Assembly: GCA_013115145.1 (NCBI GenBank)
Contig: JAAPAO010000344.1
Location: 1-37,599, forward strand
Direction of reading: 5' to 3'
Length of the DNA: 37,599 bases
Source: Perkinsus chesapeaki ATCC PRA-425
Lineage: Eukaryota; Protista; Perkinsozoa
Shown here: piece by piece, positions 6,051 to 37,599 of the stretch
How positions within the stretch are numbered: position 1 is the first letter of the stretch
Layout: every line of letters starts with the position of its first letter
Program-made: the position numbers and the translations under genes
The notes under the pieces: generated by a model
What the model was told of the DNA's origin: nothing
Seen by the model: only the letters and a program-made list of their open reading frames with translations
Database searches by the model: none

Positions 6051-7004
6051 AAAGAGTCGCCGAACATGGACTTATATTGAATAGCATGCTGCTACTATGC
6101 TTCGATAAAGGTCAACCGCGGATGATGGTATAATCGTATAAGTGACGAATCTATTCCGATGAATTGTAGATAACGATGAGTGAGCCAGTTGTCCGCGTTG
6201 ACCGTATGAGATGTGGCGTTTCCTAGAACATACCGCTCGATTTTCTAATTATACAACCGGACAGAAGACTGTTGATGAACTGTCAATTTAGTGCCATCTT
6301 TAAGGACGACCTAGTCACCTGGTAGTTACAATCGGTCAACGAATAAAGGTAATGAACCGTCCTAGTAACGTCTCAAACGGCAATGGCGACCCTACTAGAT
6401 TTACCACAATAAGAGGCTTATAAATGGAAAGTGTATAGACCACGAAAGCAGCTCAGAAGCCAAGGTGATAACTCACACTAAGTATATCGTCTAGCCCGTC
6501 AACTTCACTTAAATCTTCTCGCCATGAGTTCCAATCGATTACACCCTTCCGTCCAAGATTGCGACAATCAAAATCTGGGAACTTCTCGCTGTCATAGAAA
6601 GACAACGCGACACCGAGGAAGCCGAGTGGAAGAATGCGCATTTGAGGGCAAAAGTCGACCCAAGAAATAAGCCTGAGACTTCCACAGCGTGGGTGGTAGT
6701 GAGACTTAATACCACCCACCCTGACTACTAGTGATTCCATACGGTTGGCCAAACCGATTGTCAAGTTGTAATAGTGATAGTCGTAATTAAAACAAACGGA
6801 TAGGAGTAAGTTCTTTATTTTGGTCCTTCCTAAGCTGTCTCATATCAGGAGACATAATAAAATTATGAGACTCATATCGAATTAAGACGAGGATAGATCG
6901 GTGGCGATAGCATAATTCTTGTGCTGCAGAAGTTGTGCATTATGCAAGACTCTTTTCGTTGAAGGAATAAGAACTGATGATGCCACTAGGTCTCTCCGAG
7001 AGGG

Positions 7005-7076
7005 GACAGAGCTCGGCGAAGCGTCATTACATCCTGGTGGAGGGTCGCGGGTTCGATCCCCAGGTCTGTCATTTTT
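7005..7076 (+). tRNA. Degenerate tRNA-like element (pseudogene or tRNA-derived repeat head)
   Basis: GACAGA (7005-7010) pairs with TCTGTC (7065-7070), followed by a discriminator A and T5. B-box GGTTCGATCCC at 7050-7060. Only 67 nt, with a 3-bp T-stem and no canonical anticodon arm. Confidence 0.3.
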
Positions 7077-7383
7077 CCGCGGAACACGTTTTTCACCCTC
7101 AAACCTTCAAGCTAACCAGAAGCCTTTTTTGAATTTTTCATAGTATCCGCATTGTAGAGGCTATCAGATTGTATATACTATATAGCATGTAGTCGTAACC
7201 TATCTAGAACGACCTGGCTAATTTGTTCGCCTCACGCATGCACGCACGCACCGCGCGTGACGCACACATGGAGTGTGAGGCCGTAATGGTTAGACCTTCA
7301 CACCAGAGGGTTCATCAGATGGAAGAGATGAACCTGATCTCTTTAGTAGAGGTCACCCAAATATTTTCCAGTTACGGGTAAAG

Positions 7384-7405
7384 ACCGCAAGTTGCGGTCC
7401 GCAAC
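7384..7405. repeat. Perfect 22-bp double palindrome, T=ACCGCAAC
   Basis: a-ccgcaa-g-ttgcgg-t-ccgcaa-c. Confidence 0.9.
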
Positions 7406-7790
7406 TGTCGTTAGCCTGTCGTCAACATTCATAGATTATGAATCATAATCAGAGCCCCCTGCGGGTTCCATACAAGAGAAATAGCAACCCCTCACCTTCT
7501 TCGGAGAAGAAGAATGGATAAGATTCTTCTCCATACATGTGAGTTTCATGATGGGACACAACCAGGCTAGTTGAACTAGCTGTTAAACCCAGTAACTGGG
7601 TCAACTTGACCCACACGGGCGCCCTGCGTGCTAGGCTAATGCAGTGCCTATACACAGTAGAGCATGTTAATTCAATGAACACAAGAGATCAATAATGAGT
7701 GAGCGCACTCCTGAACCAGGAATTCTGAGTCAGGATTCCTGACTCCTGGTCGGACCAGGCTTAGCCGCTAAGGTAGGGGAGAGAACAACA

Positions 7791-7812
7791 GAGAGCATTG
7801 CTCTCAGAGCAA
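7791..7812. repeat. Perfect 22-bp double palindrome, T=GAGAGCAA
   Basis: g-agagca-t-tgctct-c-agagca-a. Confidence 0.9.
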
Positions 7813-8135
7813 GTGACGACATATTCTACGTCGTAGACCTCTCGTGTCCTCAGCTCGTAACCTTTGGATCTTAAGTCAGTAAATCACACTATGAAACCAT
7901 CAAAGTTTGACGTTCAAAAATTCAGACTCAAAATTCGACGACAAGATAGGGACATTACGAAGCTGTTAATGCAAGAAATCCCAGCCTAGGATGTTTGTGT
8001 AGGATTGGAAGCACGGCTAGCTGCGAACGCGTGAGAAAAATTTAGGTTGATTGCAACTTAGATCACGAGTAGTGTGCGCTATCTTGTATTATACAATTAG
8101 TATATTCCGTCACGCTATTGAATTTCAACAATAAC

Positions 8136-8157
8136 CTGTTGAATCAACAGTGTTGAT
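8136..8157. repeat. Perfect 22-bp double palindrome, T=CTGTTGAT
   Basis: c-tgttga-a-tcaaca-g-tgttga-t. Confidence 0.9.
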
Positions 8158-8584
8158 GTAAGTTTTCATTTCATCGGGAAAGGTGTAGTCTAGTGCTTTT
8201 CCATTATTAATGGGTTATTAAACCAAACTCCATTGAATTGAACATATTTGACTACGTAGGGAACGCGATGGGCGGAGTTAGCAGAGTCATGGTTAAAAGT
8301 CAGCTAACTTAAGTTACTTAACTGGCCTGGCTTCTCGAGCGCTTATGGCTACTACGCTGAGAACGAGGCATCGACGGGGAACACACTGTTCCCCTGAATT
8401 ACCCTTCCTTTCGGTTCTCCCCATCTGAGGGCGTATCTTCGCCTTCGGTACAGATTTTCCAATCGTACGTTTCTGTAATGAATATAAGGTTACGCAATAT
8501 GCGATAAATGAAATATCTCATGCGGCGTTTACTTTTAACCTTTCCGGGGAAGGCTTCCCCACATTCTCCTCATCTGAGCAGTTA

Positions 8585-8960
8585 TCACGCGCGTTCAGTA
8601 CAGGCTTTCCAATAGTACGTTTCTGGCTCAACGGAGTAAGCCATATGACTTAAAGTCATCGCCGTGGACCAATCTTTGACCGTCTGGGGGGTCTTTCTGG
8701 AGTCCCAAGGTAAATGCCACGCAAAGGACATGGGTGCATAAAGTCGTTCACGTCTCCAAGAATGGAAGACGAAGAAATGAATGCTTCGCCGAGCCATACT
8801 CCTTAAATGGGTGCTAGCACTGCACTTAGACGGCTTCGACCTTCTCGCAGAGGTCAGACACTTCATCAACTTCGCAGTTCTTAGTCGCGGTTGGTTTCTT
8901 GTATATGCCGAGACCGTTGATAACCGCTAGATGTAATTCAATTACAGTAATTGGTGCCCC
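8585..8960 (-). pseudogene. Possible decayed gene of an unknown secreted-type protein
   Basis: One frame reads LHLAVINGLGIYKKPTATKNCEVDEVSDLCEKVEAV*VQC*HPFKEYGSAKHSFLRLPFLET*TTLCTHVLCVAF... It is protein-like but has several stops; no family recognised. Confidence 0.25.
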
Positions 8961-9434
8961 GCGCAAGGAATCCAACAGTGAAGATTGGGAAGAATCACTG
9001 GAAGGAGTTGACGGGAGCATTTTTCCATGTCCGCGCCAGAATCGGCTGTGATGAAGAACACCCGACGAGAGATAAAGTGGCGTTAGTCTGTTTGGGTTCA
9101 ACCTACTGGGTTGAAAGATCACCTTCATTTCTATACGCTCTGCGCAGTTCCAACCGCGGACGCTACTAGCGTCACTGGGCTCTAGGCCGTATGCCGCCCA
9201 CGTACAGTATCCAACGAACCGGTAGGGCGGCCACATTGGCCGCCAGCCATAATGGCTGAGTAACCAAACGGTCAGAACACTGAGATGCCTCGAATTGACA
9301 TTCACGAAAGATAAAAAGAATAGTACTAACGATAATAGTTATCTTCGACAATGGCAATAGACATGACTACGAGAGAGATAAAATAAATCATTATAATCAA
9401 TCATCTGACATGTAGAGTTCTTGTAGGCTATGGT

Positions 9435-9456
9435 GTCGTTAATAACGACTCGTTAT
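9435..9456. repeat. Perfect 22-bp double palindrome, T=GTCGTTAT
   Basis: g-tcgtta-a-taacga-c-tcgtta-t. Confidence 0.9.
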
Positions 9457-9460
9457 AAGA

Positions 9461-10141
9461 TTACTCTTCAAGATCGCTCTCGTTTCTAGCTTCCACGGCA
9501 GCGATGTTGACCGAAATACCATTCTCCACGATACCGCAGATACGCATACCTCTAATAAGACGATCGATAGTAACCAAATCAGCATCTGATGCTATCTGAT
9601 TCAGATACAAATAGACGGCCAATAAAATTGACGTTCTTAAGGAATAGGTCTCTACTGATAGGACCAGTTTGATACAAAACGGCCTTGATATCAATCTTAG
9701 ATTTCTTTAGATCCATACCAATGATACCATTGAATAAGATCATTTTACAGATATAATTATATTTAATACCAGCTGCGTAGATGTAACGGGGTAAGGGGAT
9801 GCACTTCAACTCAGATCCTTTAATCTGATCATAGTCGTATTCACGTAGAGGAGTGATAGACATAACGTGCTCATTCGGCTCCATAGATAGATTACCAGCT
9901 GCGATCTCAAGAGCAACCACTGAGATATACCTTGCAAAGATACCAAGAGTAGATATACGGGGAACTCGGATAAGGGTGAAGTCGGTTAAGGCGGTGGTAT
10001 CCAACGAACCACCTCATATAAAATAGTAGATGTAGCTCCAGTTAAAATAAACTAACGATAGATTGGGCCTAAACTAGACCAGATGTAGGGACTGATACCA
10101 CCAGGTTTACTGATAGCAAGTTCAGAAAGGGCGTTTTCATG
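9461..10141 (-). pseudogene. Intronless frameshifted ORF of about 220 codons, unknown and foreign-looking
   Basis: Overlapping frames HENALSELAISKPGGISPYIWSSLG / AQSIVSFILTGATSTILYEVVR / SLDTTALTDFTLIRVPR...FLKNVNFIG / YLNQIASDADLVTIDRLIRGMR...ESDLEE*, with marked T/C-ending codons and no evident introns. Confidence 0.45.
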
Positions 10142-10823
10142 GTCAGTACAAGCATCAGGGCCGCGAGTCGCGGGCTGACTCTGCCGCTCCTTTCTTGTCG
10201 ATGAGCGCCTACCATCCACCTCCACGATGTGGAGTTCACATAGAAGCGGCGTCCACGCAGGAAAGCAAAGCTAACTTTGCTTGCATCGTGTCACACGTTT
10301 CGTGTGCCTCTCCGTGACACGGAGTCTGTGTGGTGCTGTACCTGGTTGTACAGTACAACCCTTTACTCGTGTGTACTACTGGTACACACGAGTACGTAAA
10401 AACGTCCGGGAGGCTTTCCGCGACAAACGTCACGCCATTTCATCCTAAGACTTGAGTAAACTGTCAGATGGTACCGTACCATCGGTAATACTAGTACGGT
10501 ACTAGTAGTACTCACGACCCCACATCTTACAACATGGAGTAATTCGTCTCTTGGATTGGTTAGAACAGTCTGGTTTATAATTAAGAAGTCAATGAATTCT
10601 AACAATCGGAATGCCAGTCGAGAAACCTCGCACTACGAATTCGCAGCATGCGACTCGAATTAGCGCTCGGAATTCTGAGCATTCGAAGGAATTCTCAAAA
10701 GCGGTCGTTCGACAATGCCGGATCGCCGATTCGGATCTCAAGAATTAAGTCAATATAAAGGTCTCGTGTAGGCTCGACGGTTAATGTTATGAACCAAACA
10801 CAATGCAAGCGGTCATAACCGTG

Positions 10824-13800
10824 TTAATCAGTTGTCATGAGCTCGTGCACCTTATCCTTGAAGACCTCAGCTGCTTCCGCATAAAGCCACTAAAATGGAT
10901 CAACAGCGGTGGAGACCCAATCTAATTCTTAACGATGAAGAGTCTTCATTGAAGACGTCAAATACTGGGACATTTCCAGGTTTGATCCAACCGAAGAGAC
11001 CTTGTGTTTGACATTGCCCAATGGACAACATTCGATGAGAACATTCACTGAGATGACAATTTGAAGGAACTTCATACCTGGCATGGAAGTCTGTAATAGT
11101 GACATCCTGGATGATGACGAACGAAGTCTCCATCCTGGTATTCTCTCGATAGTACTGATTGAGCCGTTGCCTCATGGAACGATTGCATGTGCTCTTGTCG
11201 AACCACTCTCACCTAGCGCAGTAAGTCATGCAGGGGGCTGAGCATCAGAGCGTCGAAGAGTCATCCGTCTTCTCTCGGAATCCGAGACTCGGATATTCGG
11301 AAATCTCAGTTTATAGAAGAGCGACATATGACCTTCCATATGCGACAGACCTCTCCGATCTCGTTCAGTTAAGAGAAAGATTCGCCAACACGACAAATGT
11401 GGCAAAGATATCGAAGTAGCCTTCAAGGTAAAAGTTTTACCGTGGAACCCTACCGTAAAACCCTACCTCAGGCGGCCACATTGGGCCATCCAGCCTATCC
11501 CACTCTTCAGACCCTTCAGAATCCAGAAGTTGTCGTGTGCTTCGATCGTACAACAGTTCGTACTGCATTGTACCTCCGTAGTACTGAAGCGTAGGGGGTT
11601 TCGTTCATTGTTACTCTGGTCGCTGCAGTTGTGTTCTCGGCCAGCACCTTGCAAAATGCTCGACTGCCACCAGCGAGTTAGGAAACTCTTGGACCACTCA
11701 GAATTCCTCATCATCCAAACTCCGTTATTGATGCCAGTGCTATCAACTGCAATGAGCAGCTCGACCTGTCTCGGACTGTTATATGAGGTGCGTAGAATGC
11801 GACTTCACCTCGGGGAGATGAATACTCTCTCCTCTTTGGCTTTGAAGCTGAGGATGTATGATATGCTTTAACGTTCGGGTGAGCTCATTGTCCGCCTCTG
11901 ACACCTTGAGTTCTTCCCTATCCCTGTTGGTTGGATGCGAACGGTTATAAGTGTACCTCGCAAACGACTCGTGAACAATCTACCGGCAATATTCACCCCG
12001 AGGCTCACCACTATGGGTTGTAATTCTATAGATCGAACAACGAAGAGACGAAATGACAAAAATAGCGTTGTGCAGGCTTGACAGCAGTGCTTCTAGAGCA
12101 CTTTGTCCTCGAGCGACGAAAGATGGGCAGCGTTGATCAAGCACGGGTTAGAAATCTCCCGGTCGCTGGTTGGTGACTTCCTGCTAGTCACTTGCGACTC
12201 GCAAGTGACTAGCTGCAAGTCGCAAAAACGTGCACTCGTTGGAGGGCCGATTAGATTTACATTCGTATAACTGAGTCAATGGTTCTGAGAGGGTCCATAT
12301 AGAAGGCATCACAATCCATCCACATCACCCAATCGGGCCTATCTTCACTATCCATAACGTTACGCACGGCATTAACCTACTAATACAGTACATACAGCAA
12401 GTTGCTGCCGGCAACGCTACGGGAAGAGTTGGATAGTAGGGAAACGAATGTAAGGAATCAAGGCTACTACTGTAAAGTGTTTACTAAACAGTTGAGTAGC
12501 AATACCAGACATTGCTTAGGTATTAGGGAAATTGTGGGATAAGGAAGCGATTAGGCTACTCGAGAAGGGATTGGACGTTGAGAGAATTTCTCTCAGAGAA
12601 ATAGAGAAGAATAAAATAACTCGATTATGGTTTCCGATGGTAAATTGGAAGAGCTGATAAAGATACCTTCCAAAAGAATGGCTTTCGTCCATGGATCGAC
12701 ATGTTGCTCTCCGTATTTGGATATATATCCTCCGGGCCAGTGAACTGATGAAGAGTGTACCTTCCACCAAAAAATGAAGACATGTTAAGGACATCGAACG
12801 ATGTGCATCAAAACGGCTTCGGCGAAACCTTCACGTAAATCAGTATCGGAATATTCCCTCCACATGAAGAACTTTGATGCGGAATAGCAAATGGCTCGCC
12901 GTCAGCATTTCTGGTGAAGGTGTCAAACTTATGGAGCAAAACCCAACTAATCTTTTTTCCTACCCGTGAATCTGCGAGTACAGTGCATGGTTCTCTTCAC
13001 TTAGCACTCTCACAGTCTCATTTGCAGCATACCCGCATATACTAACAATGGCAATTTTCATTCCAGGCTCTCGATATCCTCGAATATCTGCTAGTTGAGA
13101 GGAGGTATCGGCTCCTTCGACAAACCTGATGTGACATGATCCAGTCACAGCGTCAGTCTGAGCCCTGCTCAGCTAGTTCTGTACTGTGTGTAGGACTCAA
13201 GGAAGTACACTATGCTCCCGCGGGCCGAGCGAAAGTGTGAAATGGCATGAAAAGCCGCTTCGCCTCGAGATCGGAGATACTATTGGTGTATTATATGTTC
13301 GAAAGCCAAACAATCGGCCCGGGATAACTTACTGTCTCGCGTGGAATGCCCCCAGAAGCATATCCCATCCTTGAATCGGCCATGGTGTACCTTGAGTTCG
13401 ATGTTTAGTCCTATACCGCATCACATGAAGCGTACACTCGTTGAAACCTCCATCCCTTGTGAATATGAACCCCATAAGCAGCAGTGCCTGCGCTCGTCGC
13501 ATCCGACCCTCCAAGGCCATTTCTTGAGCCAAGGACCAATACCTTGGTAAGTAGTGGAGCCAAACTAGCGACTTTTTCACACTACAAACTTGCTGTAGCC
13601 ATGGGGCACTCGAACCCCAAATGGAATGGTGTAGTTGCGGTATTGAGGAGGGTTACTAGTTGATGCCTCCTATGTTGCCTTGCAGATGTCCCGGCGAAGG
13701 ACAGCGCGCGTATTTTGTATCTGTCTGCAGACTTCGAGAGAAGCTAACCAGCCCTAGCCAGATCCAAAAGCAAGGAAATTTGCAATTGAGCATGTATGAC

Positions 13801-14021
13801 TGTAGGAATCGAGGCAGTTGCGATAACTCCATAAAAGCCTGTATTGGAAAGCATTACAGCTCTTCTCCTAGTATCTCCCAGTCGAGCCCCATAGCTGTCC
13901 TCGGACACTCATCTGATATGTCAATCTTGAAATAATCACACTCACAGAGACCATCTGGGTTTGGCTGTTCCAAGTTGCGGCTCGTGACCAGCAGGAGGAG
14001 TGTGGAGCCAACGAGGAGCAT
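10824..14021 (-). CDS. GT34 family glycosyltransferase (GMA12/MNN10/XXT-like), multi-exon, N-terminal signal or anchor
   Basis: MLLVGSTLLLLVTS start at 14021. Exons encode KIAIVSICGY..NHALYSQIHGY, KPFFWK, PDWVMWMDCDA (DxD, about 12300-12330), LLIAVDSTGINNGVWMMRNSEWSKSFLTRWW, DQS and QDGDFVRHHPG. Predicted stop at 10826-10824. Confidence 0.88.
11273..11294. repeat. Perfect 22-bp double palindrome in GT34 intron, T=TCTCGGAT
   Basis: t-ctcgga-a-tccgag-a-ctcgga-t. Confidence 0.9.
12183..12213. repeat. 15-1-15 perfect palindrome in GT34 intron
   Basis: gctagtcacttgcga-c-tcgcaagtgactagc. Confidence 0.92.
12580..12601. repeat. Perfect 22-bp double palindrome in GT34 intron, T=GAGAGAAA
   Basis: g-agagaa-t-ttctct-c-agagaa-a. 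Confidence 0.88.
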
Positions 14022-14793
14022 GTTATCCTGGGCAACTTGCTACTTTCAATCGATAAACGTCTTTAGTGGCTCAGGCTGAATCTGTTTTCATGATTGGTTT
14101 TAGACCAACGGTTTATAATCTTGTTTCGACCACAAGTCGCTCGTAACGAGTTCGCATAATCAGGAGCACCTTCGTGCTAGGGGCTACCCGACAGCCGCTG
14201 TCGGCCCCCCAAGCAGAAAGCTATCACGTTTCTGAAAACAAGTTTACGTCCATCACAGGCTTCTGCCGAGTCTTGCGGATAATCCCTTCGGCCACGCGAT
14301 GAGTAATCACTTTGACAAGTGTTGCCATGGTGCAGCACGTGAGCTACTATCCAATCACAGCTCCTCTTCAGTGAAGGATGTTACACAATGCCTCGGATAT
14401 ATGGTTACCAGAACTGTAGAATCGAGAAATAGTGCTGGTGCGTTCACCTGTCTTCGATATTTGTTACACATTAATTTCTCATTGAATAATATTCGAACGC
14501 AAAACTCAAAGTTACAGTGGAGGCTTTTGCGAGTCACGCAATGGCCGTCACTATACAGTAAGTCTATCATAATCCATCCAACAACGAAGACTCAGCGCCG
14601 CTGAGCTACTGACGGGTTGAGCAATCAATGCTTGGAAGTTTGGGATTAGAAATGTCATTGAACATTTTAAGATAAATCAGAAGAAGCACGGATGCTTTAC
14701 TATCACCGTGGATCACGGTCCGTGATAGTATCACGGCAATAAGACATTCCATTGAAACCGCAAAAACCGATGGAGTCATAAATCTTGGGGAGA

Positions 14794-15237
14794 TTACAGG
14801 GGACGGTCGTAGATGTATCGAGATACCCCATTTTTCCAATACATAATGATAGTGTTCGACGGCACATATATAACCATCTGCCTCAAGGTCAAAAAGACTT
14901 TCAACTCTCTAAACGCTCGCCGAAACTTCTGAGGTAGACGTGTCTTCGAGTGGATGTTCAGAATACCACCGGGCTCAGTAGTGTAGAGAGCAGAGATGTA
15001 CTCCCTTGAAGGTCTGTTAGTTTCAACTTCATCGCTGAGAACGAAAGTAAGGTTGCAAACACCAACAGAGCCACGAAAGTGAAGCTCCGTGACCGGGACC
15101 GTTCTAGCAGTTGAGTTGAACTGAAGCGTATATTTGCCGTACAGGCACGCGGGACATGTGGACTCGGACGGAGGAGCAGGTAGGGCGATGACAACGCAGA
15201 TGACAGAAGCGAAGGTGGAGAGGATAATATTGCGCAT
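14794..15237 (-). CDS. Hypothetical secreted protein, 147 aa, single exon
   Basis: ATG at 15237: MRNIILSTFASVICVVIALP, a signal-peptide-like start. Open frame to the stop at 14794; no recognisable domain. Confidence 0.65.
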   Translation of the reverse strand: MRNIILSTFASVICVVIALPAPPSESTCPACLYGKYTLQFNSTARTVPVTELHFRGSVGVCNLTFVLSDEVETNRPSREYISALYTTEPGGILNIHSKTRLPQKFRRAFRELKVFLTLRQMVIYVPSNTIIMYWKNGVSRYIYDRPL

Positions 15238-17151
15238 AATGATCTGAATTCGCTGCCAGACAATTGAACAATAGGAGAACGGGATAACGATCGCCGAGCA
15301 ACAAGCCACGGGCCTCTAAACAGTTAGACTTGAAACCTCAGCGCGGAAACAGTGCGCAACCTGCAGTCAGATACGTAGACATTTTCTCCTAATACATACA
15401 ATGAGCGTATTGGAGACAGCACGCATGTCGTTGTAGGAAAGCGAACAAGTGGATGAACATGCGCCACTCCAAATTGTGGCCACGATCTCCATAGGTCGTG
15501 AAGATGTATTGCTGTTTATCAACTCGACACTTATGCCCGAGTGGGGGAAAACTGCTTACAATTTCTTAGTTGGTCTGAACCTTTTATGAGCAAAAGTCGA
15601 TTATGGCGCCTATCGCCTGCGTGCGGACCAACTCCCACGCATGCACATGCTACCTTTCTGTCGACAATAGAGAGACAGAGTAGCCCAATCTACAAGGACT
15701 CCAATCGAGAAAAATGGATAAATACCGCAGCTAGTATAACAGTAGCCCGACTGCCGCCACTGCGTCATCGTAGCAAAGAAAAAATAACGGAAAATGACCA
15801 CATAATCATCACTGAGTAGCCCTTGTGCGGAGGGAGCCATCTTGTGGGGAAAAAGTGAACTTCACGGCGCAAGCGGCGAGCCAACACAAGCCTCATCCGC
15901 GCACCTAGGATCGAGGATCATGCGCACATCCCGCGATGTGCGGGCCGCACATTGTCGTCGTCCGGCCCATGTAACATGCATGCGTACCATCTTAATTCTT
16001 TCCATTATGAGGATTCATGTGCGCACTGGAATTATATTTCGGAGCTCCACTTCTGAATGGTTAGCTTTCTGGCCTTCTGTGGCACCTCCAGAAGACTCTT
16101 AGAACTGGGTCAGAGGGGCCTGTTATAAGCAGTCCTTCCTACTTAGCTTACTCTCGCTACAGTAATTCATTCTCTAATCCTTCAAGGACTCAAGTCTTCT
16201 CTTCTCAGAATTTCATACCACAACTGGCCGTCATGTCACCTGTGATCTTACAACGGTGAGGCCTTTCAACTTGGGAGATCAAGAATTGGATCGGGCCGAT
16301 TACAACCATTCACCTTTATACCATCGGTATGGGAAACCTTCAAGTGACTTGACCTATGTTTTAGTCTACTCCGAATAACTGCGATAAAAATTCGCGTGTG
16401 CGAGGATTCCCATATGCTTTGTCAACCCAGTTGCCCACGTAACGGTTCGAAACTTCGGCTAAATTCGCCGACCGTGATGTTTTTTGTGCCTAGCTACAGC
16501 TCAGCGAGGAGTACCCAATGCTAAGGTTTGCGCTCAGGAAGGATCGGCGGAAATGGGGCTGCTCTAAGTCCATTTTCACGTGTATAGTAAAACTCCTAGA
16601 ACACATGTCTCCACGATAGTAAGTGCAAGCTTTCGAGTTATGCTGGGATGGACTCTATTCAGGACCTATTCAGTCCAATCCACCTTCGATTGAAGTCTCC
16701 AAACTACCATGCTGAGCCCAGCGGTGTCCTCAGATTAGCGTCCAACCGAGACCGGTGGAATCAAGAGAAATTCAAAGTACGCATCGGTTCCCATAATCGC
16801 ACTGTCGTCCCGTAGAGTTACTGTGAGGGTGAAATGCACAAGTGATATATAAATATATAACGCATAAAATCCGATCCTTCAATACAAGTGGCCCGCGTAT
16901 CCTCAATTTTTGAAAAGTAAGCAATTTCGTGGCGCGCGACATTCCGAGTTGCGCTGCCTTTGTGAATTTTGTCTACGGTAATCGACAAAGGCCTATAAAA
17001 CTTAACAGTACGGGCTCACGAATTAACCTCCCGGGAATCGTTTGACTGTCCTGGTATGTCTCTTTGATCGTAACCTTCACGTTTGACCTAAGATTCGTAT
17101 TAGGTCGGGTCAAGGGCTCTCTCAGTTTGATTCCGTTTTCCGTATCCTACA

Positions 17152-19132
17152 ATGGCCCCCAAGAAGAAGGTAGAAGAAGTGAAGAAGGTTAAATTCGGTC
17201 GACCAGGCAACACCCTCCGTATGGGTCTCGTCGGACTTCCCAATGTCGGCAAATCCACCACTTTCAACGTCCTTACTAAGGTAGCTTGGCTCGCAGGAGT
17301 TTCTATACCGCATTTCTTTCACATCAGTGTTCTATCCCCGCTGAGAACTTCCCCTTTTGCACAATAGATCCCCATGAGGCCGTCGTTAACGTGCCCGACG
17401 AAAGGTAGTGTGTGTTGTTTTCTTTCGATTGGCTCACTTTCCTTCTCAGAATGGATTGGTTGTCGGCCACTTTCAAGCCCAAGAACACTATAGCGGCAGT
17501 TCTTAGAATTTGGGACATTGCCGGTCTTGTCCCCAACGCTCACGAGGGAGAGGTGCGAGCCGCTAACTGGGAAGATTCTTTTGAGGTTGACTTTAGGGCC
17601 TCGGCAATGCGTTCTTGTCGAACATCCAATCGGTTGATGGTATTTATCATGTTTGCCGAGCTTTCACTGATGAGGATATTGTTCATACCGAAGGAGAGGT
17701 GATATCTTAGGTTGAAGCGTGCAAGATGCACAAAATGTCGATTCCCTGCGCGTTTCTCAGGTTAACCCCGTTCGGGATCTCGAGATCATTCAGAATGAGC
17801 TTATCTTCAAGGACTTGGCGCAAGCTACCAATCGGGCCGCCGAGTACGCCAAGAAGGCCGAGCAGAATAAGAAGATGAAGGAGCTTCAAGAGGAGTAAGA
17901 AGTACCTGCTCCTATCTTTCTACTATGCGCTTTATTTTCAGATACGAAGCTCTCACCAAATGTCAGAAGATCCTTGAAAGCGGAAAGCCTCTCCGTCTTA
18001 ATGCCGACTGGACTTCCAAGGAGGTTGAGATAGTCAACAAGTAGGCTCGGTCGTATAGCTTCTCGGCTTTGAAGATGAGGTTACCCCTCACTGCATTTGT
18101 ATAAGATGTTGGATCCATCGAACCATTTCTGAATTTCATTTGTCGAATCGATTCTAGTACAGAAACTTACTTGGCGAAATTTCGTTGGACGACTAGTGGT
18201 CTGTCTTTCACAGGTATCAATTCCTCACCACCAAGCCCACTGTCTACCTCGTCAACATGAGCGAGAAGGATTTCATCCGTCAGAAGAACAAGTGGCTCCC
18301 TAAGATCAAGGAGTGGGTGGACGCTAATGGCGGTGGCCCCATCATCCCCTACTCTGCTGCATTCGAGATGGACTACCAAGAATGCGGTAACTTGTTTCCT
18401 GTGAGACTGTGCCCGTGAAGTGTGACGGTTAGGTGACTCTGAGGAGGACAAAAAGGCCTTCCTTGAGAAGACCGGTGCTAAGAAATCTATGATCGATAAG
18501 ATCATCAAAACAGGGTACGGCCGACGGCTCTCGAACCGGCGTACTCTCTCCTCAGTTACGACTACCTGGACTTGATTCACTTCTTCACTTGCGGTCCCGA
18601 TGAGGTCCGATGCTGGACTATTCAGCGGGGCACCAAGGCCCCTCAGGCTGCTGGAGTTATCCATACTGGTGAGGGTGTTGTGGCGTATTTCCCAGTGAAA
18701 TCACTAGGCTTAATAATAGGAACGCTTTACTGATATGAATAAGTTACGATGATGCGACTGTTGCTATAATGTGTGTAGTTGTTTGGATTATCTCGAGCCT
18801 TATCCATTCACGTAAAAATGGGAAAGGCTGATCTTTGCTCCACTTGACGCTCAGAATAGGTCAATAGCGTGTTTGGAATTCCGCCACTTGATGCTTGTTT
18901 TGTCAGATATGGAGCGCGGTTTCATATGTGCTGAGACCTACCGTTATGAAGATATTCGGGAGCTCGGCGACGAGAGCGCTGTAATAATCCCTCCTCGGTC
19001 TCACCCAGGAATAATGCTGCTTTCGATTAGGTTAAGGCGGCCGGTAAGCTGCATCAAAACGGCAAGAACTACGAGGTCCAGGATGGCGACATTTGCTTCT
19101 TCAAGTTCAACGTCACCAACAAGGGCAAGTAG
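17152..19132 (+). CDS. OLA1: Obg-like ATPase 1 (OLA1/YchF), multi-exon
   Basis: [13 protein letters not shown]-loop, [72 protein letters not shown] and [16 protein letters not shown]; TAG at 19130-19132. Confidence 0.97.
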
Positions 19133-19160
19133 ACGACGCCTTCGCGGTGGCGCCGCCGAA

Positions 19161-19208
19161 CTGTCTCCTCCGAGTTTCTCCTTCCACCTCACACCCGCTC
19201 TGGTCTAG
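19161..19208 (+). promoter_or_regulatory. Polypyrimidine tract plus AG; candidate trans-splice or 3' acceptor upstream of the next gene
   Basis: Pyrimidine-rich 19161-19200, TAG ending at 19208, ATG at 19263. No evident upstream donor in the 130-bp gap after the OLA1 stop. Confidence 0.35.
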
Positions 19209-19262
19209 CGTTGGGTTGTCGGGTGAAATATTTGGGAAGTGTTGAATTGCCAGTTGTCAATC

Positions 19263-21747
19263 ATGGCTGAAGAATATTTCACAGCGAAGCGGCGGTACCT
19301 GCTGCATCAGGGAATTGACCCTGACACTGTCATTAGAGAAGATGATGACTGGGAAACTGAGTAGTAGCGGGGGATTCTTGGATTAAGTTTTTACAGTAGA
19401 AATCGTCCTATGGGGATCATTCCGCTCGAATATAGAAAGCTAATCGGTAAGAATGTCAGTACTGAATGCAATGCGCGATTGGAACTTCAAGTGTGGTTCA
19501 TAGTGAAACTTTCATTCGTAGGATTTGTAACTTTGTGCCATATGCTTCATATGAAGTTTATGTCATATGATATGAATGGTATTTTTGCGAAGATAGCTAA
19601 GCGTCCTTAAGCTATCTGTTTAGAGGCGCATTACTTCTCAGTTGGACATTCCTCCCCCGTGGAAGTCGCTTTACACACTCATTTGTTGAGCCAGGGAGTC
19701 ATGAGCGGAACATCGATCAGGGGCGACTTATGTCTCCAGGAACATAATACAGTATGTTCAATATTCAATAAGGAAATCGTCATTATATTAGAAATTAATT
19801 TCAAGACGAGTTGCTCATTTTAACTGCTCTTTAATGATTCAGGTCTCAAAAGCTATCATCTCTCCTTGAAGAATATGAACGATCGGTAGACGTTCGAGCA
19901 GCATTGAGTTATGTTTGCTGTCGCGATATCACAGTTCCGTTGGAGGTGCCTCTGGCAGAAGACACCGATAAGGTAATACAAGCTCTGCACTGCCGGTTCA
20001 AAATTAAATCTACGTCATATAAATTCTCATATCCCGGCATACTGGAGGCGTCACATCCGTTTCTTCTAGGGATTATTCAACGCCCTCTACCTCACACGAT
20101 TTGGTCGAAACTGTAGAATTAGAAAGGGTAGGAAATTGGCCCGAGTTTAGAAAATTGGCCCAAGTTGTCGTCGATTAGCCAGGCTATTATTCTGTCGTAT
20201 AGGTGTAAGTCTGACTATTAATCTGTCGTATAGGTGTAAGTCTGACTATTATTCTGTCGTATAGGTGTAAGTCTGACTATCATTCTGTCGTATAGGTGTA
20301 AGTCTGACTATTATTCTGTCGTATAGGTGTAAGTCTGACTATTATTCTGTCGTATGGGTGTAAGTCTGACTATTACTCTGTCGTATAGGTGTAAGTCTGA
20401 CTATTACTCTCTCTTATAGGTGCTGTGTCTGGGAGCTAACATGGTGGAAACACCGGTCTACGCGGCACAGATAATATCCAAGCGACTTGAGCAGAGTTCA
20501 GCTCGACCGGTATGTACATTCACCTCACTTCAGGACATAGGCAGGTTTCTCCTCAGCTAATTCTCATCATTTCCGGTGGCATTGGCCGACTCACACCGTT
20601 GCTGTGCGACAATGTGATAGCTTGGTCCAAGAAGGAAGACTTAGTGGATCTCGGTAATATGGACGGCTTATTATTGTGGCCGACTCTCAATATGGTGCGG
20701 GGAGGGCATAGTTGTCTCGAGGAAATACATACCTCTAAACATGCACGCTCGAACACGTAGGCTTTTTTGTCAGCTACCAACCTTACCCGTGGAGAGGTAC
20801 CGTACCAGTCCAAGCTTAAAGGGCTCACCGAAACTGAGAAGCTGGAGCCAGTTCGAGAGGAAGACGCAATACGATTCAGCCGAGATGGATACAAGTCGAG
20901 GGACGATCTAGAAGGGTACTAACAGGTGTGGGGTGGGGTGTACGGGACTCCCGTACCACCCGTAACGGGAGGTTAGGCGGTCTTTACGCCGCGCATCTTT
21001 TAGCTACTATCATCATAGACGTGGACTGAGTCCGCTGGACTCGTTTCTCGCATCGGAGGTGGTAAACAGTTTGGGTTATCTTAGGTTCTTGACTGAAGGC
21101 AATCTCTATCTTGAAGTGATACTGGCGGTTCTAATCGAGAAACAGAAGATAATTGGCTATAGCGACATTCGTTTGTTGGACCGCCACAATGCAGCCTCCT
21201 TCGACAAGAAGAGCTTCTGTGGCAAACTTGTGATCATTCTAGAAAACACCAGCACCAACACGGGCAACAATGTCACCCACACGAAAGAGCTCCTCGGTGA
21301 AGCCAATCTATTGAGCCCCGAGACGCGAATGGCTGTGGTGGATATTCCCTATCTGGGGCGGAGGGCCTTAGCTACTTTGGCCTGGCATTTCGGTGAGCTT
21401 CTGGGAATTTGATCTTGTCGAAACGGATGCTCTGTAGGCCCGCTAGTAGCTGGCTACGAAGCGCGAATGCCTCCTGTGTTGCTTAACTATCCCGAGGATT
21501 TCCCAACCCTTCCCGATAGAGTTTTGGGAGTCCATATGGCGGCAGGAGAACTCATTCGAATGGCTAAGTACGTTCATTTTCCTTGCCTTTTGCGACCCAT
21601 GCATTTAGATATTCAAGGGGCACGGCCAAGCAGAGATTTTTTGACATCCCGGAAGATTTCCCGAGAGCTATTTACCAGCAAGTCGTCGAGGCTGAGCCAT
21701 TATTGAATGAGATGCGCCGTATTCTTGGCGAGCGAATTCCAGCGTGA
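19263..21747 (+). CDS. YdcF-like / DUF218 protein with N-terminal extension, multi-exon
   Basis: VLCLGANM..PVYAA, LIISGGIGRLT, IILENTSTNTGNNV, AVVDIPYLGRRALATL and AAGELIRM match the motif order I recall for E. coli YdcF (LLISGGIG, EDQSTNCGENA, VQDPTMQRR, GELPRL). Stop at 21745-21747; 5' exons uncertain. Confidence 0.78.
20184..20422 (+). repeat. 31-bp tandem repeat, 7 full copies plus a partial, inside the YdcF-like gene
   Basis: Unit CTATTATTCTGTCGTATAGGTGTAAGTCTGA at 20184, 20215, 20246, 20277, 20308, 20339, 20370, partial at 20401; no spacers. Confidence 0.95.
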
Positions 21748-22885
21748 TTTTTCTTCTGTTGCGTGTCTAGTTTTTCTTCGGAGTTTTGGCGTTGCGCGGT
21801 CAAAGGATGGAGATTCGGGGCGCCTCGGTAGTTTGTGGGAAATTGAACGCACCTTCATATTCTAAAGTACAGAACAGCAGTGCAGGGTTCAAGCTGTCGT
21901 ATTATACGACTCGTATGTAGTCTCCTAATTTGATGAGTGTGAAGGCTCACTCTTTACAGTTAGGGAAATTTCATGCGGGTTGGAGTCCAAGCTGGACTGT
22001 CCAACTGTTATACTACTAGTATTAGGAGTCGACTGAATATCACTAGTCTCATACACGGGACTAGCTCTTAGCTGCTAATTAATAGCTACGTAGTCAAGTA
22101 CTAAGCCAGCTACTTAGTCTGAGACTAGCATCGAAAACTTACGTGGGCCACGCATCAGACTAACGTTCTGTAGCACTGGCTACTAGCCAGAATAAGAGCG
22201 ACAGCTGCGAAAGCTCCAAGTTTTAGAGGATTGTCCACCTTTCCTGTGGTTGAGGCGTCCGAACGGAGATTATGCGGTGAAAGATTTTCTAATCCTTTTT
22301 GCCAAGCATCTAGCTTGAGACATACTCTTTCTAAGTTGAAGACGGATAAGGGCACTCGGGGCTTCATCCTCTGACTCCTGGAAGGATTCGCGCGCTTCGT
22401 GGGCTTAGTGCGACCTCTTAAAAACATACCGACGGAATGTACCGAGTATGACGGTCATACTCAATAACTACTGCTCAGTTATCAATGATAACTTATCACG
22501 TTCTCAGTATCAACATATCACACAGTGGTAACAGTGGCGAAGATCTGCGACAAGGCAAGCACTGATACATCTGTGCTTGCCAGGTTGCATAGACTGGCAA
22601 GCAACCTGAAGTTCCAAGTCCTGAACGGATAACTCCAACAGTCTTGAAAAAGTCAAAGGAAAAAGTCAACAGTGCACCAACACGTGTTATACACTGTACG
22701 AGGCCATTGTCTTGATGACAACTACCGTTAGACTCTCCGCTGTGTACTGGGCAGCGAAGCCTCGCACAATCGCATCAGGGCTTGCGGCCATCTTTCTTAG
22801 GAGGATGACAAATTGACATTGACAATGTCGTCTATCAGAGTGAGTTTGTTGCACATGGTGCTACTCGCGAAGACCCGCTCCGCCC

Positions 22886-22907
22886 GTAGAAAGTTTCTAC
22901 TAGAAAC
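22886..22907. repeat. Perfect 22-bp double palindrome, T=GTAGAAAC
   Basis: g-tagaaa-g-tttcta-c-tagaaa-c. Confidence 0.9.
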
Positions 22908-23021
22908 CCGAAGCTGAACTGGCCGTGAAAGCTGTGTTATATCGTATCCGCGGTGCCGAAGAAGCTCTGAATCGAGGCCCTGATAGCCATTCAGATGCGG
23001 TGGTCTCCGCCTTGGCTGCAG

Positions 23022-23043
23022 ACTATCTAAGATAGTCTATCTT
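23022..23043. repeat. Perfect 22-bp double palindrome, T=ACTATCTT
   Basis: a-ctatct-a-agatag-t-ctatct-t. Confidence 0.9.
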
Positions 23044-23084
23044 CACATCCTTGGAGATGCTGATTACCCTGCATGCATCTGGGC

Positions 23085-23670
23085 TCATATAGAAGTCCGA
23101 CAACATAGCGATAAACGACATTTCGTAGTTGCGGTCCATACTGGGAGCCTAAGTACGCGGGAAGCGCGACCTTCGATCATGCTGGCTATCTTGCCCAGGT
23201 TATGGTCCACTTCAGTGAGGACCTCGCGGAGAGCATCGCCTGAGTGTGTGTCTCTGTCTTTCTGGCCCCACTTGGTATTCTCAGACTTCCCAGCGTCGAG
23301 CAGGGCCCTCTCCCCAGAAATGGCTCCTCTATCCCATTCGGCACGGAAGTCTTCCGGATAAAACCAGTGCTGAACATAGGGGCGTGCGTCAGAGCGTAGA
23401 CAAGCTCGTTTGACACGCCCTTGGTTTTCCTTACGGAGGCTTAGAGACCACGCGGCGTGGAACAAGTAACCGCGTAGATTCTGATTATCGAGCTCGAACA
23501 CGTCAGAGACAGCGTTTCGGAGGCCCTTCTCGAAGTCTGTCATGACACGCTGTACATGGAACTCTCATCTGCGAGCTAGAATGACACGTTTCAACTCGCG
23601 AAGTCTTCGCGAGAACGAACCGGTAAGTCCTCTCTTGCTTGTCAGGTAGAATAGCCTATGCAAGGGGGAG
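23085..23670 (-). mobile_element. Mutator-like (MULE) transposase pseudogene fragment
   Basis: LPLA*AILPDKQERTYRFVLAK / frameshift / LRELKRVILARR*EFHVQRVMTDFEKGLRNAVSDVF....LRGYLFHAAWSL matches the MULE core (P..yalLP.K...TY; tDFE.al.nAv..vF; gC.FH). Stops and a frameshift are present. Confidence 0.8.
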
Positions 23671-24382
23671 TGAGGATCATATCGTACAGTGCAAGCTCGC
23701 AGAGTCACTCTGTCAGAGTGCCTATTCGTGTAGCCCTTATCCGTACAGCTGCAACACATAGTTTTGAGCAAATACTTCAAATACTTCCAACTTTGCATTG
23801 CAATTTTGCAATACTTCCTGTTCGCGAAGAAGCCACAAATGGACTTCGAGGACATATTCGTTGGCAAAATACTAGGATTATTAGTAGAATTCGAGCTCGC
23901 ATAGTTTTGCTCGCAATACCGAAAGACTAAATCTCCTCATTTTTTGCCATATCTTCAATCCTCTAGGGTTGAAGTGTGATAAACTTAGCAATATCAGCTG
24001 GCATCTTATCCAGGAAGTCCATGGATTTCTGGTTTGCATCAAGGGTGGCACCTACATCTTTTTGTTGTTGGTCAAGTAAGAGCCATTCTGCATAGAAGTC
24101 TTGAAACTCGATAACATTAGGCTGCGATTTCAGCTTGAGCCCTTTAAGTTTGCTCAACAGATCGCCTTTGCGGACCGTCTCGGACTTTTCATAAACACTT
24201 CTAAGATGCTTCTTCAACCCAGACAGTGATACTTTCATTAGCTATTAGCTTGGTCCCTCGAAAGTAAACATCAGTAATCTTACATGCGGAGCCCTTCATA
24301 GATTGTCGTCGTGCCTTGTACCAGTTTGACCGCGTACGAGTTCAACCCTGTTCCAGCTTGCACTGTACGATATAATACTCAC
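23670..24382. repeat. Inverted-repeat pair (19 bp perfect, about 28 bp with 2 mismatches) bounding a segment of about 710 bp
   Basis: ATATCGTACAGTGCAAGCT (23679-23697) is the exact reverse complement of AGCTTGCACTGTACGATAT (24355-24373). Similarity extends outward to 23670/24382, not inward; no TSD found. Confidence 0.75.
23963..24238 (-). mobile_element. Retrotransposon gag-like fragment (copia/UBN2-like)
   Basis: LKKHLRSVYEKSETVRKGDLLSKLKGLKL..NVIEFQDFYAEWLLL.QQ.KDVGATLD......FLDKMP follows the helical gag pattern; no pol domains seen. Confidence 0.55.
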
Positions 24383-24838
24383 CCCGTAAGGGGTACGAAC
24401 TTACTTTCGAAAGAATAGATATCCGATCTCAGGTGAATAGTTTGAGCGAATGCCGGTGGCTCGCTTGGTCATAGCTTGAACTGCTACACGGCTTTATGAA
24501 GGCCCTACAATTACTTCTAGTAATACTATAGTATACTAGTAATTTACTGGTATACTTTCTATCAATGGAGGTAGTTGTCAGAGTCGACATGCTCGTGGTG
24601 GTCACTTGGCCTAATCACCTGGCTATTTTTGAGGAGGACTCAGCGCTTCGGGCATTGTTCGGCTTGCGCTGAGTCACAGATCGCTATCACAACTGGTGAT
24701 TCACTGGCTCACGGTTACCGTGAGGCTCACGGTAACCGTAAAGCTCACGGCGTGAGCTTCACATGGCACGCTCTACGCTTCATCTGGATTCCATGAAGCG
24801 GATGAGGTCTTTACTACTAGCTGGAAATGAAGGCCATC

Positions 24839-24860
24839 CAATAGCGGCTATTGAATAGCC
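24839..24860. repeat. Perfect 22-bp double palindrome, T=CAATAGCC
   Basis: c-aatagc-g-gctatt-g-aatagc-c. Confidence 0.9.
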
Positions 24861-25523
24861 TGATGATAAACTCACTATACTAGCCGATGGCCCGGACCAG
24901 TTCCTCACTCGAGTACCTCACCTAGTGTGGTCACAGTCCAAGGGCTTCCCCAAGTTTGATGACAACTGTCTCCCAAAGTTAAAGTTAGGGCTCGTGATTT
25001 GTCACGGCAGAGCTTCTTATAGGTAGTCCCACCAGACAAGAGTCATATAAGCTTACTGTTGGCTGTCGATCAGTTTTACTCATTCACCGTTTTTGAAATT
25101 CAGGGAGCAAACATGGTTATAGAGTCATTCGAGCGAACTCTCGTGGCTTTGCGTGGCACGATGACCTCCCACGTTCTGGGTACGTACATGTTCAGTTGCA
25201 GAGTTCATCAAAAACGGAAATTGCGTGCGCATAAATTACCGTGAAATCCCCATGACGCAGAGGTTGGGAGTGTGAACACTGTAAACACAACGTATAACAG
25301 TGTAGCACAACGTAAGTGCTTACTCTCTGCCAAAGCTATTCAGTAGGGCACTCGGGTCTGCCCGACCTCACGTCTAACACTGACAAGGTCAGCGGACCCG
25401 AATGTCCTACCTCCACTGGAGGTAGGACATGGCATGTCCAGGGGATGCGGAGCGCTGGCTTCAACTCGCATTTACTTAATCACGTTCCACATCCAAACAA
25501 TCTCCGACAATCTTCATTACTAG

Positions 25524-25545
25524 CTTGAACGGTTCAAGTTGAACC
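25524..25545. repeat. Perfect 22-bp double palindrome, T=CTTGAACC
   Basis: c-ttgaac-g-gttcaa-g-ttgaac-c. Confidence 0.9.
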
Positions 25546-25780
25546 ACTATATTCAACGTATGATTCAATTGACGTAGCGCGCCATTTTATGGCGCATCGA
25601 AAAATCTCTGCTTAGTAATATTACTCACGCTGATCTACTTCCAGTTGATCGCTACCATGAAAATCTCTCGAATTTCCGAAGATGCGCGGAAATTTCGGAG
25701 ATCACTGGAATACAGGTTAACGAAGTTTGTCCCTTTTACTTGAGGACGTCTCCCGATTGAGTTGGCACGCGCATTTACGA

Positions 25781-25802
25781 GTATGTACTACATACTATGT
25801 AG
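25781..25802. repeat. Perfect 22-bp double palindrome, T=GTATGTAG
   Basis: g-tatgta-c-tacata-c-tatgta-g. Confidence 0.9.
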
Positions 25803-26921
25803 CGTTTGAATCTTGATGGGCGAGCGAAATAGGTTTCATTGAGTCAATGAAACATATTTGAGTGAAGTTATTCGAGTTGTTAAAGTTGTTTTAGTTTATT
25901 TTCCCGTCCCGCCCTCCCTGGTGAAGCGTCTCTCCAACTCGCATAATGTCGTCAACATTATGTTCTCCGGAATCGATAGTACTTCAGCGCGAGTCGGAGA
26001 AAATAAGAATAAATATAAACATGATCTTCTAAATAAATTCAAGCGCCGGATCGACATAATGTCGACGACGAGTCGTCGGTGTGCTGTCGCATTTGCGAAC
26101 CACGGCATGTAACCTAAATGATGGGATTCATGAAAATTCAGGGACTCAGCCGAATGGGATTCGCAAAGCAGGAATGCCCATGATGCACATTTATACATGT
26201 AGAGTCTACATGGTAGACACGAAGGAGCACTTAGATTATGTACTGAATGTCTACAAAATGTATACATAACCGTTTTGTCCATTGCCTATGGGAACCTGAC
26301 GGACGATGTATTTGTGATGAAGGGTTTTGATATAAGCCTCAAAACATTGTGAATCTGACGTACTGCTCCGATATTCTGGAGCTCTGGAGTACACTACTCG
26401 ACGCTGGGAACCGTCCGCACACTTCATCGCTCCACCAGGAACACGGGCATCGCATGAATTCACACAGGATTCTTTGAAGATGTTGTCGGCTCTACGTGTC
26501 GCGAAGTAATCTAGGATTAGTACTATAATTCCAACCGAAGGTTGCCCTGGGGTTTTCGTGTCGTTTTCAGTCATTGGAGGTTGGGAAAACTCCTACCCAG
26601 CCAGATAATGCTTAGTAGGCATGGTAATACTCGCCAACTGGGATGGTTGGATTTGTGCACACAAAATCAGGCTTCTCCACTCTACATAAAACTAAGTCGA
26701 ACTCGGCATGGAGTGCCTCTCTTTGCACACTGCAGGCCACTGAGCTCAATGCATTCACTCTCTGATGACAACATAACCACTGTCATTGTTAGAAACCGTT
26801 TCCATTTATAATAATGGTTATGCTAGATACTCATACAGTGATCTAATGGAACGAACTGAATGTTTGGTATTTGTAACTTCTTTACTATATAAAAACGCTT
26901 TTAGAATATCATCTTATATTA

Positions 26922-32900: not shown

Positions 32901-33188
32901 GTGCTGTCCTTGAAGTCCGCAATAGTTTGACACATCAGATGGGAGATACCAGGCTGATCCTTTCCGCGAATACTGAACAAGTACAGGCTGCTACCCGAAA
33001 TGCCCATTTCAGCCTCCAAAGGGGCAGTCGGTGCCGGAGAAACTGATGGAAAAAGCGTAAAAACACTCGGCGTCCCACGTCTTACCACTAAGCGTGCTGT
33101 CGGCACTATCTCTGTGCGAACGAGATCTGCGGCGCTGCTGAGGACGAAGCTCCCAAGTATCAGTGGTTGTTGGTGTTGTTGAAGTCAT
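26922..33188 (-). CDS. serB: ACT-domain phosphoserine phosphatase (SerB), internally duplicated: ACT / degenerate HAD / ACT-ACT / active HAD
   Basis: ATG at 33188 (MTSTTPT). First ACT: LFSIRGKDQPGIS..LLDISQ. C-terminal HAD: RRLVVFDMDSTL, VIDELAK, AM.GEIDFFESLKQRV, MPGA..L, AVISGGF, LDYAYAN.LE and AVGDGANDIPML..AGLGVAFCAKP. Stop at 26922. Confidence 0.9.
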
Positions 33189-33596
33189 AATAATAATAGT
33201 AAACTGTACACAATGAAATGATAACGATATTCATGATCCGGAAAACGTTTGATTCTGAGAGCAACTTTTTCGAGGCAAAATTATGTCTTATTGGCTGTGG
33301 AAAACATGCCAATCTATGTTAAATATAGAGTGTCTGATATTCAGTGCATTAGGCTGCCTATCTGTAGAGTCCGTAATACCAACAGCTTCAGACACTTGCA
33401 TATTCAATAGGACGACGAATTCACAAATTTGTTAAGATAACAGAAATCCACTAAAACTAGCAGGAGTGAAGTGGGACGTTGGACCAAGTGTAAAACGCTA
33501 TAAGACCATACATCCTCATCAGTGAGCGGCGCAGCGCATAGAAGCTGAGCAACGAGTCGGAGGTGGCAACTCGACCACTTCACGGCCTGCCTGGGA

Positions 33597-34667: not shown

Positions 34668-34738
34668 TTTCCCCAAAGCTCCTCATTGCGGCAGATCTTT
34701 AGCCGAACAGTAAAATATTTGTCGCTCATATTTCAGTT

Positions 34739-37490: not shown

Positions 37491-37599
37491 TTCAATGGGC
37501 AAGTGGGATGCTAAATAATAATAAACTGATAATATTTATAGTGCGTTGCACCGGCGCGCTGCACACAACGCATGCGTTTCGCCGGATACGTTTCACATA

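Follow-up and report, generated by a model that had tools for sequence, protein, structure and literature searches.

What process fills the non-coding DNA of one contig with dozens of 22-bp sequences that are unrelated in their letters but built to a single plan? This question is raised by contig JAAPAO010000344.1 of Perkinsus chesapeaki ATCC PRA-425 (assembly GCA_013115145.1), which was analyzed over its entire length of 37,599 bp (hereafter, the window). Each 22-mer can be written as T[1-7]+revcomp(T)+T[2-8] for an 8-mer T; T and its reverse complement, rc(T), account for every base, and the copies have no sequence in common. An earlier note on this DNA had interpreted the 22-mers as footprints of hAT-type transposon excision. 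This interpretation is supported by the present analysis, as a peak at a unit length (k) of 8, a single-base center, and a net gain of 14 bp were all found in the window as the note had predicted, along with the hAT target preference nTnnnnAn. We thus consider it likely that the 22-mers are scars of hAT-type cut-and-paste transposon excision with a uniform repair outcome, and refer to them as scars below. The hairpin model of hAT excision reportedly goes back to Coen et al. in 1986 and Zhou et al. in 2004.

Mismatches were scored by majority rule across the arms of the 22-mer, and overlapping copies were collapsed before mismatch classes were counted. Under this rule, the 11 starts previously listed as perfect all show 0 mismatches to the architecture, and the 13 listed as one-mismatch copies are all real with 1 mismatch each, although the copies at 10285, 21021, and 21984 have 2 mismatches if T is taken from the middle arm alone. 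A full scan added perfect copies at 8932 and 10935 and one-mismatch copies at 6918, 14705, 22805, and 35078 (Table 1). Overall, 13, 17, 15, 24, and 44 non-overlapping copies with 0, 1, 2, 3, and 4 mismatches, respectively, were found, as compared to 0, 0, 0.1, 3.0, and 30.6 in 10 dinucleotide shuffles; the earlier estimate that 1.4e-4 perfect copies would be expected by chance (37.6 kb x 4^-14) is correct.

The geometry of the copies is narrowly fixed. When k was varied from 4 to 13 and compared with 20 shuffles, k=8 stood out as a sharp peak with 13 perfect copies and 25 copies with at most one mismatch (0 in shuffles); there were 0 perfect copies at k=6, 7, and 9 to 13, and k=4 and k=5 were at background. 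Direct repeats at an offset of 14 nt numbered 34, with 6.3 expected, and 32 of these 34 are exactly 6 nt long (T2 to T7) because T1 and T8 are forced by the model to mismatch their partners. The signal at k=8 only and the 6-nt repeats at offset 14 fit the 8-bp target-site duplication that marks a hAT footprint. In addition, the 22-mer can be resolved into a pair of 15-nt palindromes that overlap and have one unpaired center base each, and in every perfect copy these two bases are the complements of T8 and T1. Among all perfect palindromes in the window, only the class with a 1-nt center is enriched (40 vs. 2.4 expected with 7-nt arms, 17 vs. 0.3 with 8-nt arms, 6 vs. 0 with 9-nt arms, and 3 vs. 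0 with arms of at least 14 nt), and palindromes with a center of 0 or 2 to 6 nt are near expectation.

This rigidity bears on a transposon-free origin, by which snap-back or template-switch synthesis at breaks (e.g., by polymerase theta) would produce small inverted triplications as errors of repair or replication. Template switching can generate inverted duplications, and no element was found in the window; on the other hand, template-switch insertions vary in length and loop whereas the unit here is always 8 nt and the center always 1 nt, and the targets show a transposase-like sequence preference. We therefore regard a transposon-free origin as very unlikely.

Several established footprint types were also compared with the scars. 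Templated insertions by polymerase theta carry inserts of variable length copied from nearby, whereas both the length (k=8) and the center (1 nt) of the scars are fixed. With joints of the Transib/RAG type, k=5 was at background and palindromes with a 0-nt center were not enriched at arms of at least 7 nt. Mutator-like (MULE) footprints have duplications of 9 to 10 bp (8 to 9 bp for Muta1) and excision is mostly precise; no copies were found at k=9 or k=10. Finally, P-element footprints, which also have an 8-bp duplication, retain bases of the element termini and hence a common sequence, and the scars share no sequence.

The target 8-mers point to the type of enzyme involved. A target logo was prepared from the 30 8-mers rebuilt from scars with at most one mismatch; T at position 2 or A at position 7, the hAT preference nTnnnnAn, occurs in 34 of 60 cases (27% expected; P=1e-6), and position 1 favors a purine and position 8 a pyrimidine. 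For Hermes, an integration preference for nTnnnnAn has been reported, and the duplications listed mostly have GT or AT at the start and AC or AT at the end (PMC10368747; PMC2803484). Another enzyme that makes 8-bp duplications and flank hairpins could have produced the same scar chemistry, with a Mutator-like element such as Muta1, a Merlin-like element (duplications of 8 to 9 bp), a transposon from a superfamily yet to be described, or a domesticated transposase that works on mobile substrates as candidates, and no hAT gene was seen in the window. Flank hairpins are not known for Merlin. For Muta1, both flank hairpins and duplications of 8 or 9 bp have been described (PMC5499845), and Merlin remnants have been reported in P. 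marinus (PMC8101967). Yet a signal at k=9 is absent even though duplications of MULEs and Merlin are often 9 bp long, more than 90% of Muta1 excisions are precise (PMC5499845), and the target bias nTnnnnAn is a hallmark of hAT, such that we judge an enzyme outside the hAT superfamily to be an unlikely agent.

The direction of change can be read from a nested pair of scars at 14700 to 14735. If the younger scar at 14705 is collapsed to its T, the sequence from 14700 on becomes a perfect 22-mer built on another T (CTATCACG), and 12 of the 14 constraints of this older scar involve bases outside the younger one. Of every 14-nt deletion that can be made in the window, with trivial edge effects on existing scars set aside, only those at 14705 yield a perfect scar with a new T. 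A scar is therefore 14 bp added to a single 8-mer, as the earlier note had claimed and as this one case bears out, and an existing scar can become a target once more. Open frames gained no length from the collapse of each scar to T as compared to random 14-nt deletions, but this comparison carries no information, given that the scars are located in non-coding DNA.

These properties can be accommodated by a specific excision and repair route, the exact steps of which we propose with moderate confidence. hAT transposases nick one base into each flank, and the flank is then closed into a hairpin whose tip base is left unpaired. For an element that had duplicated its 8-bp target T on insertion (T-element-T) and had left the site later, the left flank hairpin would be T1-7 / T8' / T7'-T1' and the right one T8'-T2' / T1 / T2-8. 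If the Perkinsus host opened or unfolded these hairpins 8 nt or more from the tip, rc(T) would stand at the end of the left 3' tail and T at the end of the right one, and the two perfectly complementary 8-nt tails could anneal; trimming of flaps and filling of gaps would then give T1-7 + rc(T) + T2-8, with a gain of 14 bp. Annealing over 8 nt would be the longest microhomology open to the two ends, and a competing 6-nt direct microhomology would restore T tracelessly. On paper, the hairpin geometry claimed earlier holds, as unfolded T1-7+rc(T) and rc(T)+T2-8 overlapped on rc(T) yield exactly the 22-mer including both center bases, and palindromic hAT footprints have been found to center on the complement of the flanking base (PMC5873905). 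Scars would be fixed only where harmless, i.e., in introns, untranslated regions (UTRs), and intergenic DNA, and would then decay by point mutation.

The mismatch classes are consistent with such decay. Scars above background number 13, 17, 15, and about 21 with 0, 1, 2, and 3 mismatches, respectively, and these near-equal classes match constant formation and neutral decay. The earlier note had seen in the scars massive past activity with a stereotyped repair outcome; massive activity is not required, since the flat mismatch spread fits a modest steady rate with neutral decay. By a rough calculation, a steady state of this size would be maintained by scar-forming excisions at only about 5x10^5 times the per-site mutation rate, counted per genome and generation; modest, sustained activity of a few elements would be enough.

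Single-base-centered palindromes also occur beyond the 22-mers, with 27 solo odd palindromes found in addition to those within scars. These, which include the core of a long palindrome and cascades of overlapping palindromes (Table 1), may represent alternative joints from the same hairpin intermediates, and the long palindrome in an intron of the GT34 glycosyltransferase gene is likely an alternative hairpin-derived repair product. Direct repeats at offsets of 6 to 13 and 15 to 40 nt in the window revealed no clear second footprint family. A 719-bp unit at 23667 to 24385, the only inverted-repeat element seen in the window, has 38-nt inverted repeats at its ends (84% complementary) and no target duplication, and the scar at 23699 directly follows its left arm.

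It can hardly be credited that the scars arose as errors of sequencing or assembly, or that they are motifs under selection for a function, for example in protein binding or as RNA hairpins. Palindromes disturb assemblers, and in one public run (X2) the short-read contigs from either side stop at the palindromic scar at 8539 (8548/8558); scars may accordingly fragment short-read assemblies of the genus Perkinsus. However, in two studies with a total of four public runs (X1 of 2020; X2 to X4 of 2022), the contigs reproduce positions 7300 to 12700 (5.4 kb) with zero differences, and therefore the scars are not an error peculiar to one assembly, with the qualification that the runs may share one strain; scars are also present in separate P. 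olseni assemblies. A functional motif is further opposed by scar-free exons, graded decay, and target bias, and a binding factor would have nothing to recognize because the copies are without a common sequence.

Among the lineages sampled, the scar appears to be restricted to Perkinsus. Two P. olseni loci contain 3 perfect scars and 1 one-mismatch scar (L001, 19.5 kb) and 1 one-mismatch scar located exactly at an intron 5' splice site (L002, 8.7 kb), respectively. By contrast, a Symbiodinium locus (25 kb) has 0 perfect and 0 one-mismatch scars and 1 two-mismatch scar, and no scars were found in an Amoebophrya locus (23 kb) and in a locus of one further relative (19 kb). The scar in L002 (5360 to 5381; T=GTGAGTTT) stands at the very start of the intron and partly duplicates the 5' splice site, with GTGAGT being followed 15 nt downstream by a second TGAGT; now and then, a scar may give rise to an alternative splice donor. 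In L001 (9440 to 9543), the C-terminus of P0025 is annotated as a 51-nt intron followed by a reading through the perfect scar at 9502 to 9523. Read without this intron, P0025 ends in RPVCTGAVPHEEL and a stop, matching the RRICNGTIPMRY end of its homologues; it is therefore probable that the tail was annotated wrongly and that the scar belongs to the 3' UTR.

A number of observations weigh against hAT excision as the source of the scars. No hAT or other transposase domain was found by Pfam scans of the 27 longest open reading frames (ORFs) of the window, and scans of the window for 8-bp direct repeats (exact or with one mismatch) 40 to 8000 bp apart that flank terminal inverted repeats gave no credible element; none was found in 28 kb of P. 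olseni either. Reads and contigs of the four runs showed no 14-nt presence/absence polymorphism over the 5.4 kb covered. When P. olseni L002 was compared with the window by blastn and tblastn, exons alone aligned, with introns and intergenic DNA too diverged. Because introns and intergenic DNA are unalignable between the two Perkinsus species, the ancestral single-T state is seen in the one nested pair only, and because neither a hAT transposase nor an element with 8-bp duplications was found in the window, the agent is deduced from its signature. Similarly, annealing of 8-nt tails and the enzymes involved are suggested solely by the geometry of the product. Finally, short classical hAT footprints (repeats at offsets of 6 to 9 nt) showed no clear enrichment in the window, and this weak signal is unusual relative to hAT in other hosts.

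Comparison with known systems helps to place the scars. In Ac/Ds, Tam3, and Hermes footprints, as here, the 8-bp duplication is kept on both sides and inverted flank copies are centered on the complement of the element-adjacent base. Ac/Ds excision in yeast gave palindrome arms of up to 20 nt, with most joints using microhomology, and 28 footprint types among 128 events were found in Candida, mostly with 0 to 3 and at most 3 inverted bases (PMC5873905). While footprints are thus heterogeneous in Ac/Ds hosts, one product, the complete 8-nt inverted duplication, dominates here, and, unlike in known hAT hosts, the scar is recognizable genome-wide, at about 1 per 0.25 to 0.4 kb where non-coding DNA is rich in scars. 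Coding joints of V(D)J recombination, made by RAG, and Transib excision share with the scars the off-center opening of flank hairpins that leads to palindromic additions; RAG and Transib hairpins, however, form exactly at the border and give even palindromes, with 5-bp duplications in Transib, as compared to a 1-base center and an 8-bp unit here. In mPing (PMC4561436) and Muta1 (PMC5499845), a duplicated target likewise supplies the microhomology that fixes the repair product, but these elements use the direct repeat and restore the site precisely, whereas the scars would use the inverted 8-nt complementarity provided by two hairpins and gain 14 bp.

Table 1. Scars, related palindromes, and mapped exons in the window
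Feature	Position	T	Remark
Perfect scar	7384..7405	ACCGCAAC	
Perfect scar	7791..7812	GAGAGCAA	
Perfect scar	8136..8157	CTGTTGAT	
Perfect scar	8932..8953	TGTAATTG	
Perfect scar	9435..9456	GTCGTTAT	
Perfect scar	10935..10956	ATGAAGAC	GT34 intron
Perfect scar	11273..11294	TCTCGGAT	GT34 intron
Perfect scar	12580..12601	GAGAGAAA	GT34 intron
Perfect scar	22886..22907	GTAGAAAC	
Perfect scar	23022..23043	ACTATCTT	
Perfect scar	24839..24860	CAATAGCC	
Perfect scar	25524..25545	CTTGAACC	
Perfect scar	25781..25802	GTATGTAG	
One-mismatch scar	6918..6939	CTTGTGCA	
One-mismatch scar	7428..7449	TTCATAAT	
One-mismatch scar	7559..7580	CAACTAGC	
One-mismatch scar	7722..7743	ATCCTGAC	
One-mismatch scar	8539..8560	CCTTCCCC	
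One-mismatch scar	10285..10306	ATCGTGTG	
One-mismatch scar	10310..10331	CTCCGTGT	
One-mismatch scar	10491..10512	CTAGTACC	Adjoins odd palindrome centered at 10475
Nested pair	14700..14735	ACCGTGAT (younger); CTATCACG (older)	Younger one-mismatch scar at 14705-14726 within older scar
One-mismatch scar	21021..21042	GTGGACTC	
One-mismatch scar	21896..21917	GTCGTATG or GTCGTATA	
One-mismatch scar	21984..22005	AGTCCAAC	
One-mismatch scar	22478..22499	GTTATCAC	
One-mismatch scar	22805..22826	ATGACAAT	
One-mismatch scar	23699..23720	GCAGAGTG	
One-mismatch scar	26197..26218	ATGTAGAC	
One-mismatch scar	35078..35099	TTGCCACT	
Two-mismatch scars, 13 of 15	7245..24757		Starts 7245, 8083, 9092, 10220, 11007, 11427, 12200, 12394, 14094, 14182, 15930, 19495, 24736
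Two-mismatch scars, remaining 2 of 15	starts 510 and 895		Scars at 895 and 7245 in low-complexity sequence, least secure
Long 1-nt-center palindrome	12170..12226		28-nt arms, 86% complementary; perfect 15-nt-arm core centered at 12198; GT34 intron
Cascade of overlapping 1-nt-center palindromes	24708..24759		Centers 24716, 24725, 24750; arms 8, 14, 9
1-nt-center palindromes with common arm	25402..25439		Centers 25416 (14-nt arms), 25432 (7-nt arms); different 8-mers implied per side
GT34 gene exons	between 13985 and 10830		Minus strand; L002 synteny
Nucleotide-sugar transferase exons	6641-6471, 5993-5844, 5010-3448		Minus strand; L002 synteny
P-type ATPase exons	below 3017		Minus strand; L002 synteny

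With regard to genomic context, long ORFs are few in the window, and scans for tRNA genes and against Rfam found nothing. Exons were mapped by synteny with P. olseni locus L002, and all are on the minus strand; the protein of the glycosyltransferase gene at 3448 to 5019 (minus strand) is 77% identical to that of P. olseni and shows 33 to 49% identity to homologues of dinoflagellate and other origin, including those of Symbiodinium, Polarella, and Amoebophrya. No mapped exon is overlapped by a scar with at most 2 mismatches, and the scars lie in introns and intergenic DNA, with about eight scars in the GT34 introns and 17 in the 4.2-kb spacer at 6642 to 10830. Scar density is about 1 per 250 bp in 6.6 to 12.7 kb and about 1 per 400 bp in 21.0 to 26.2 kb, and this regional unevenness could be explained by local hopping or chromatin accessibility. 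The 11 kb from 26300 to 37599 carry a single scar (at 35078) and an apparent multi-exon P-type ATPase/HAD gene on the minus strand.

The 6642 to 10830 interval also differs from its counterpart in P. olseni. In L002 (2950 to 5200), the GT34 gene model runs on into an adh_short (short-chain dehydrogenase) part, with the next gene 370 bp downstream; adh_short coding sequence was undetected in the 4.2-kb interval of the window, which suggests gene loss or rearrangement along with spacer expansion. Repeats in the window include a 63-nt unit in 3 tandem copies where the contig begins (1 to 189), a 31-nt unit in tandem over about 300 bp (20146 to 20453), and, at 9664 to 10158 and 11647 to 12333, repeat families with copies elsewhere in the genome, as indicated by extra contigs with 88 to 95% identity and raised depth.

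Palindromic hAT footprints and the hairpin mechanism are already known; what appears to be new is the uniform outcome and its genome scale. In the full-text literature searched, which lacked most subscription journals, neither a 22-mer scar spread across a genome nor a Perkinsus hAT element was found to have been described. The history of cut-and-paste transposition can normally not be read from a genome because footprints are too short and too varied to be recognized without before-and-after comparison; with one dominant product, as here, excision scars become recognizable by sequence alone and provide a site-by-site record of former element positions, including target preference and nested revisits, with scar decay as an internal clock. 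We tentatively propose, with slightly less than even confidence, that across the genus Perkinsus essentially every imprecisely repaired hAT excision has been resolved via the 8-nt inverted-duplication microhomology, leaving a readable and datable record of tens of thousands of transposon visits. If this is true, small insertions and palindromes in introns and intergenic DNA would stem to a major extent from this lineage-specific source, and this alveolate would have an unusual pathway of hairpin opening and end joining, e.g., one with little or no classical joining of the Ku/Lig4/Artemis type. Each event adds 14 bp and a strong hairpin-forming sequence to introns and UTRs. The scars also offer a direct readout of how hairpin-capped breaks are repaired in this lineage of shellfish parasites, which is also relevant to genome editing in Perkinsus.

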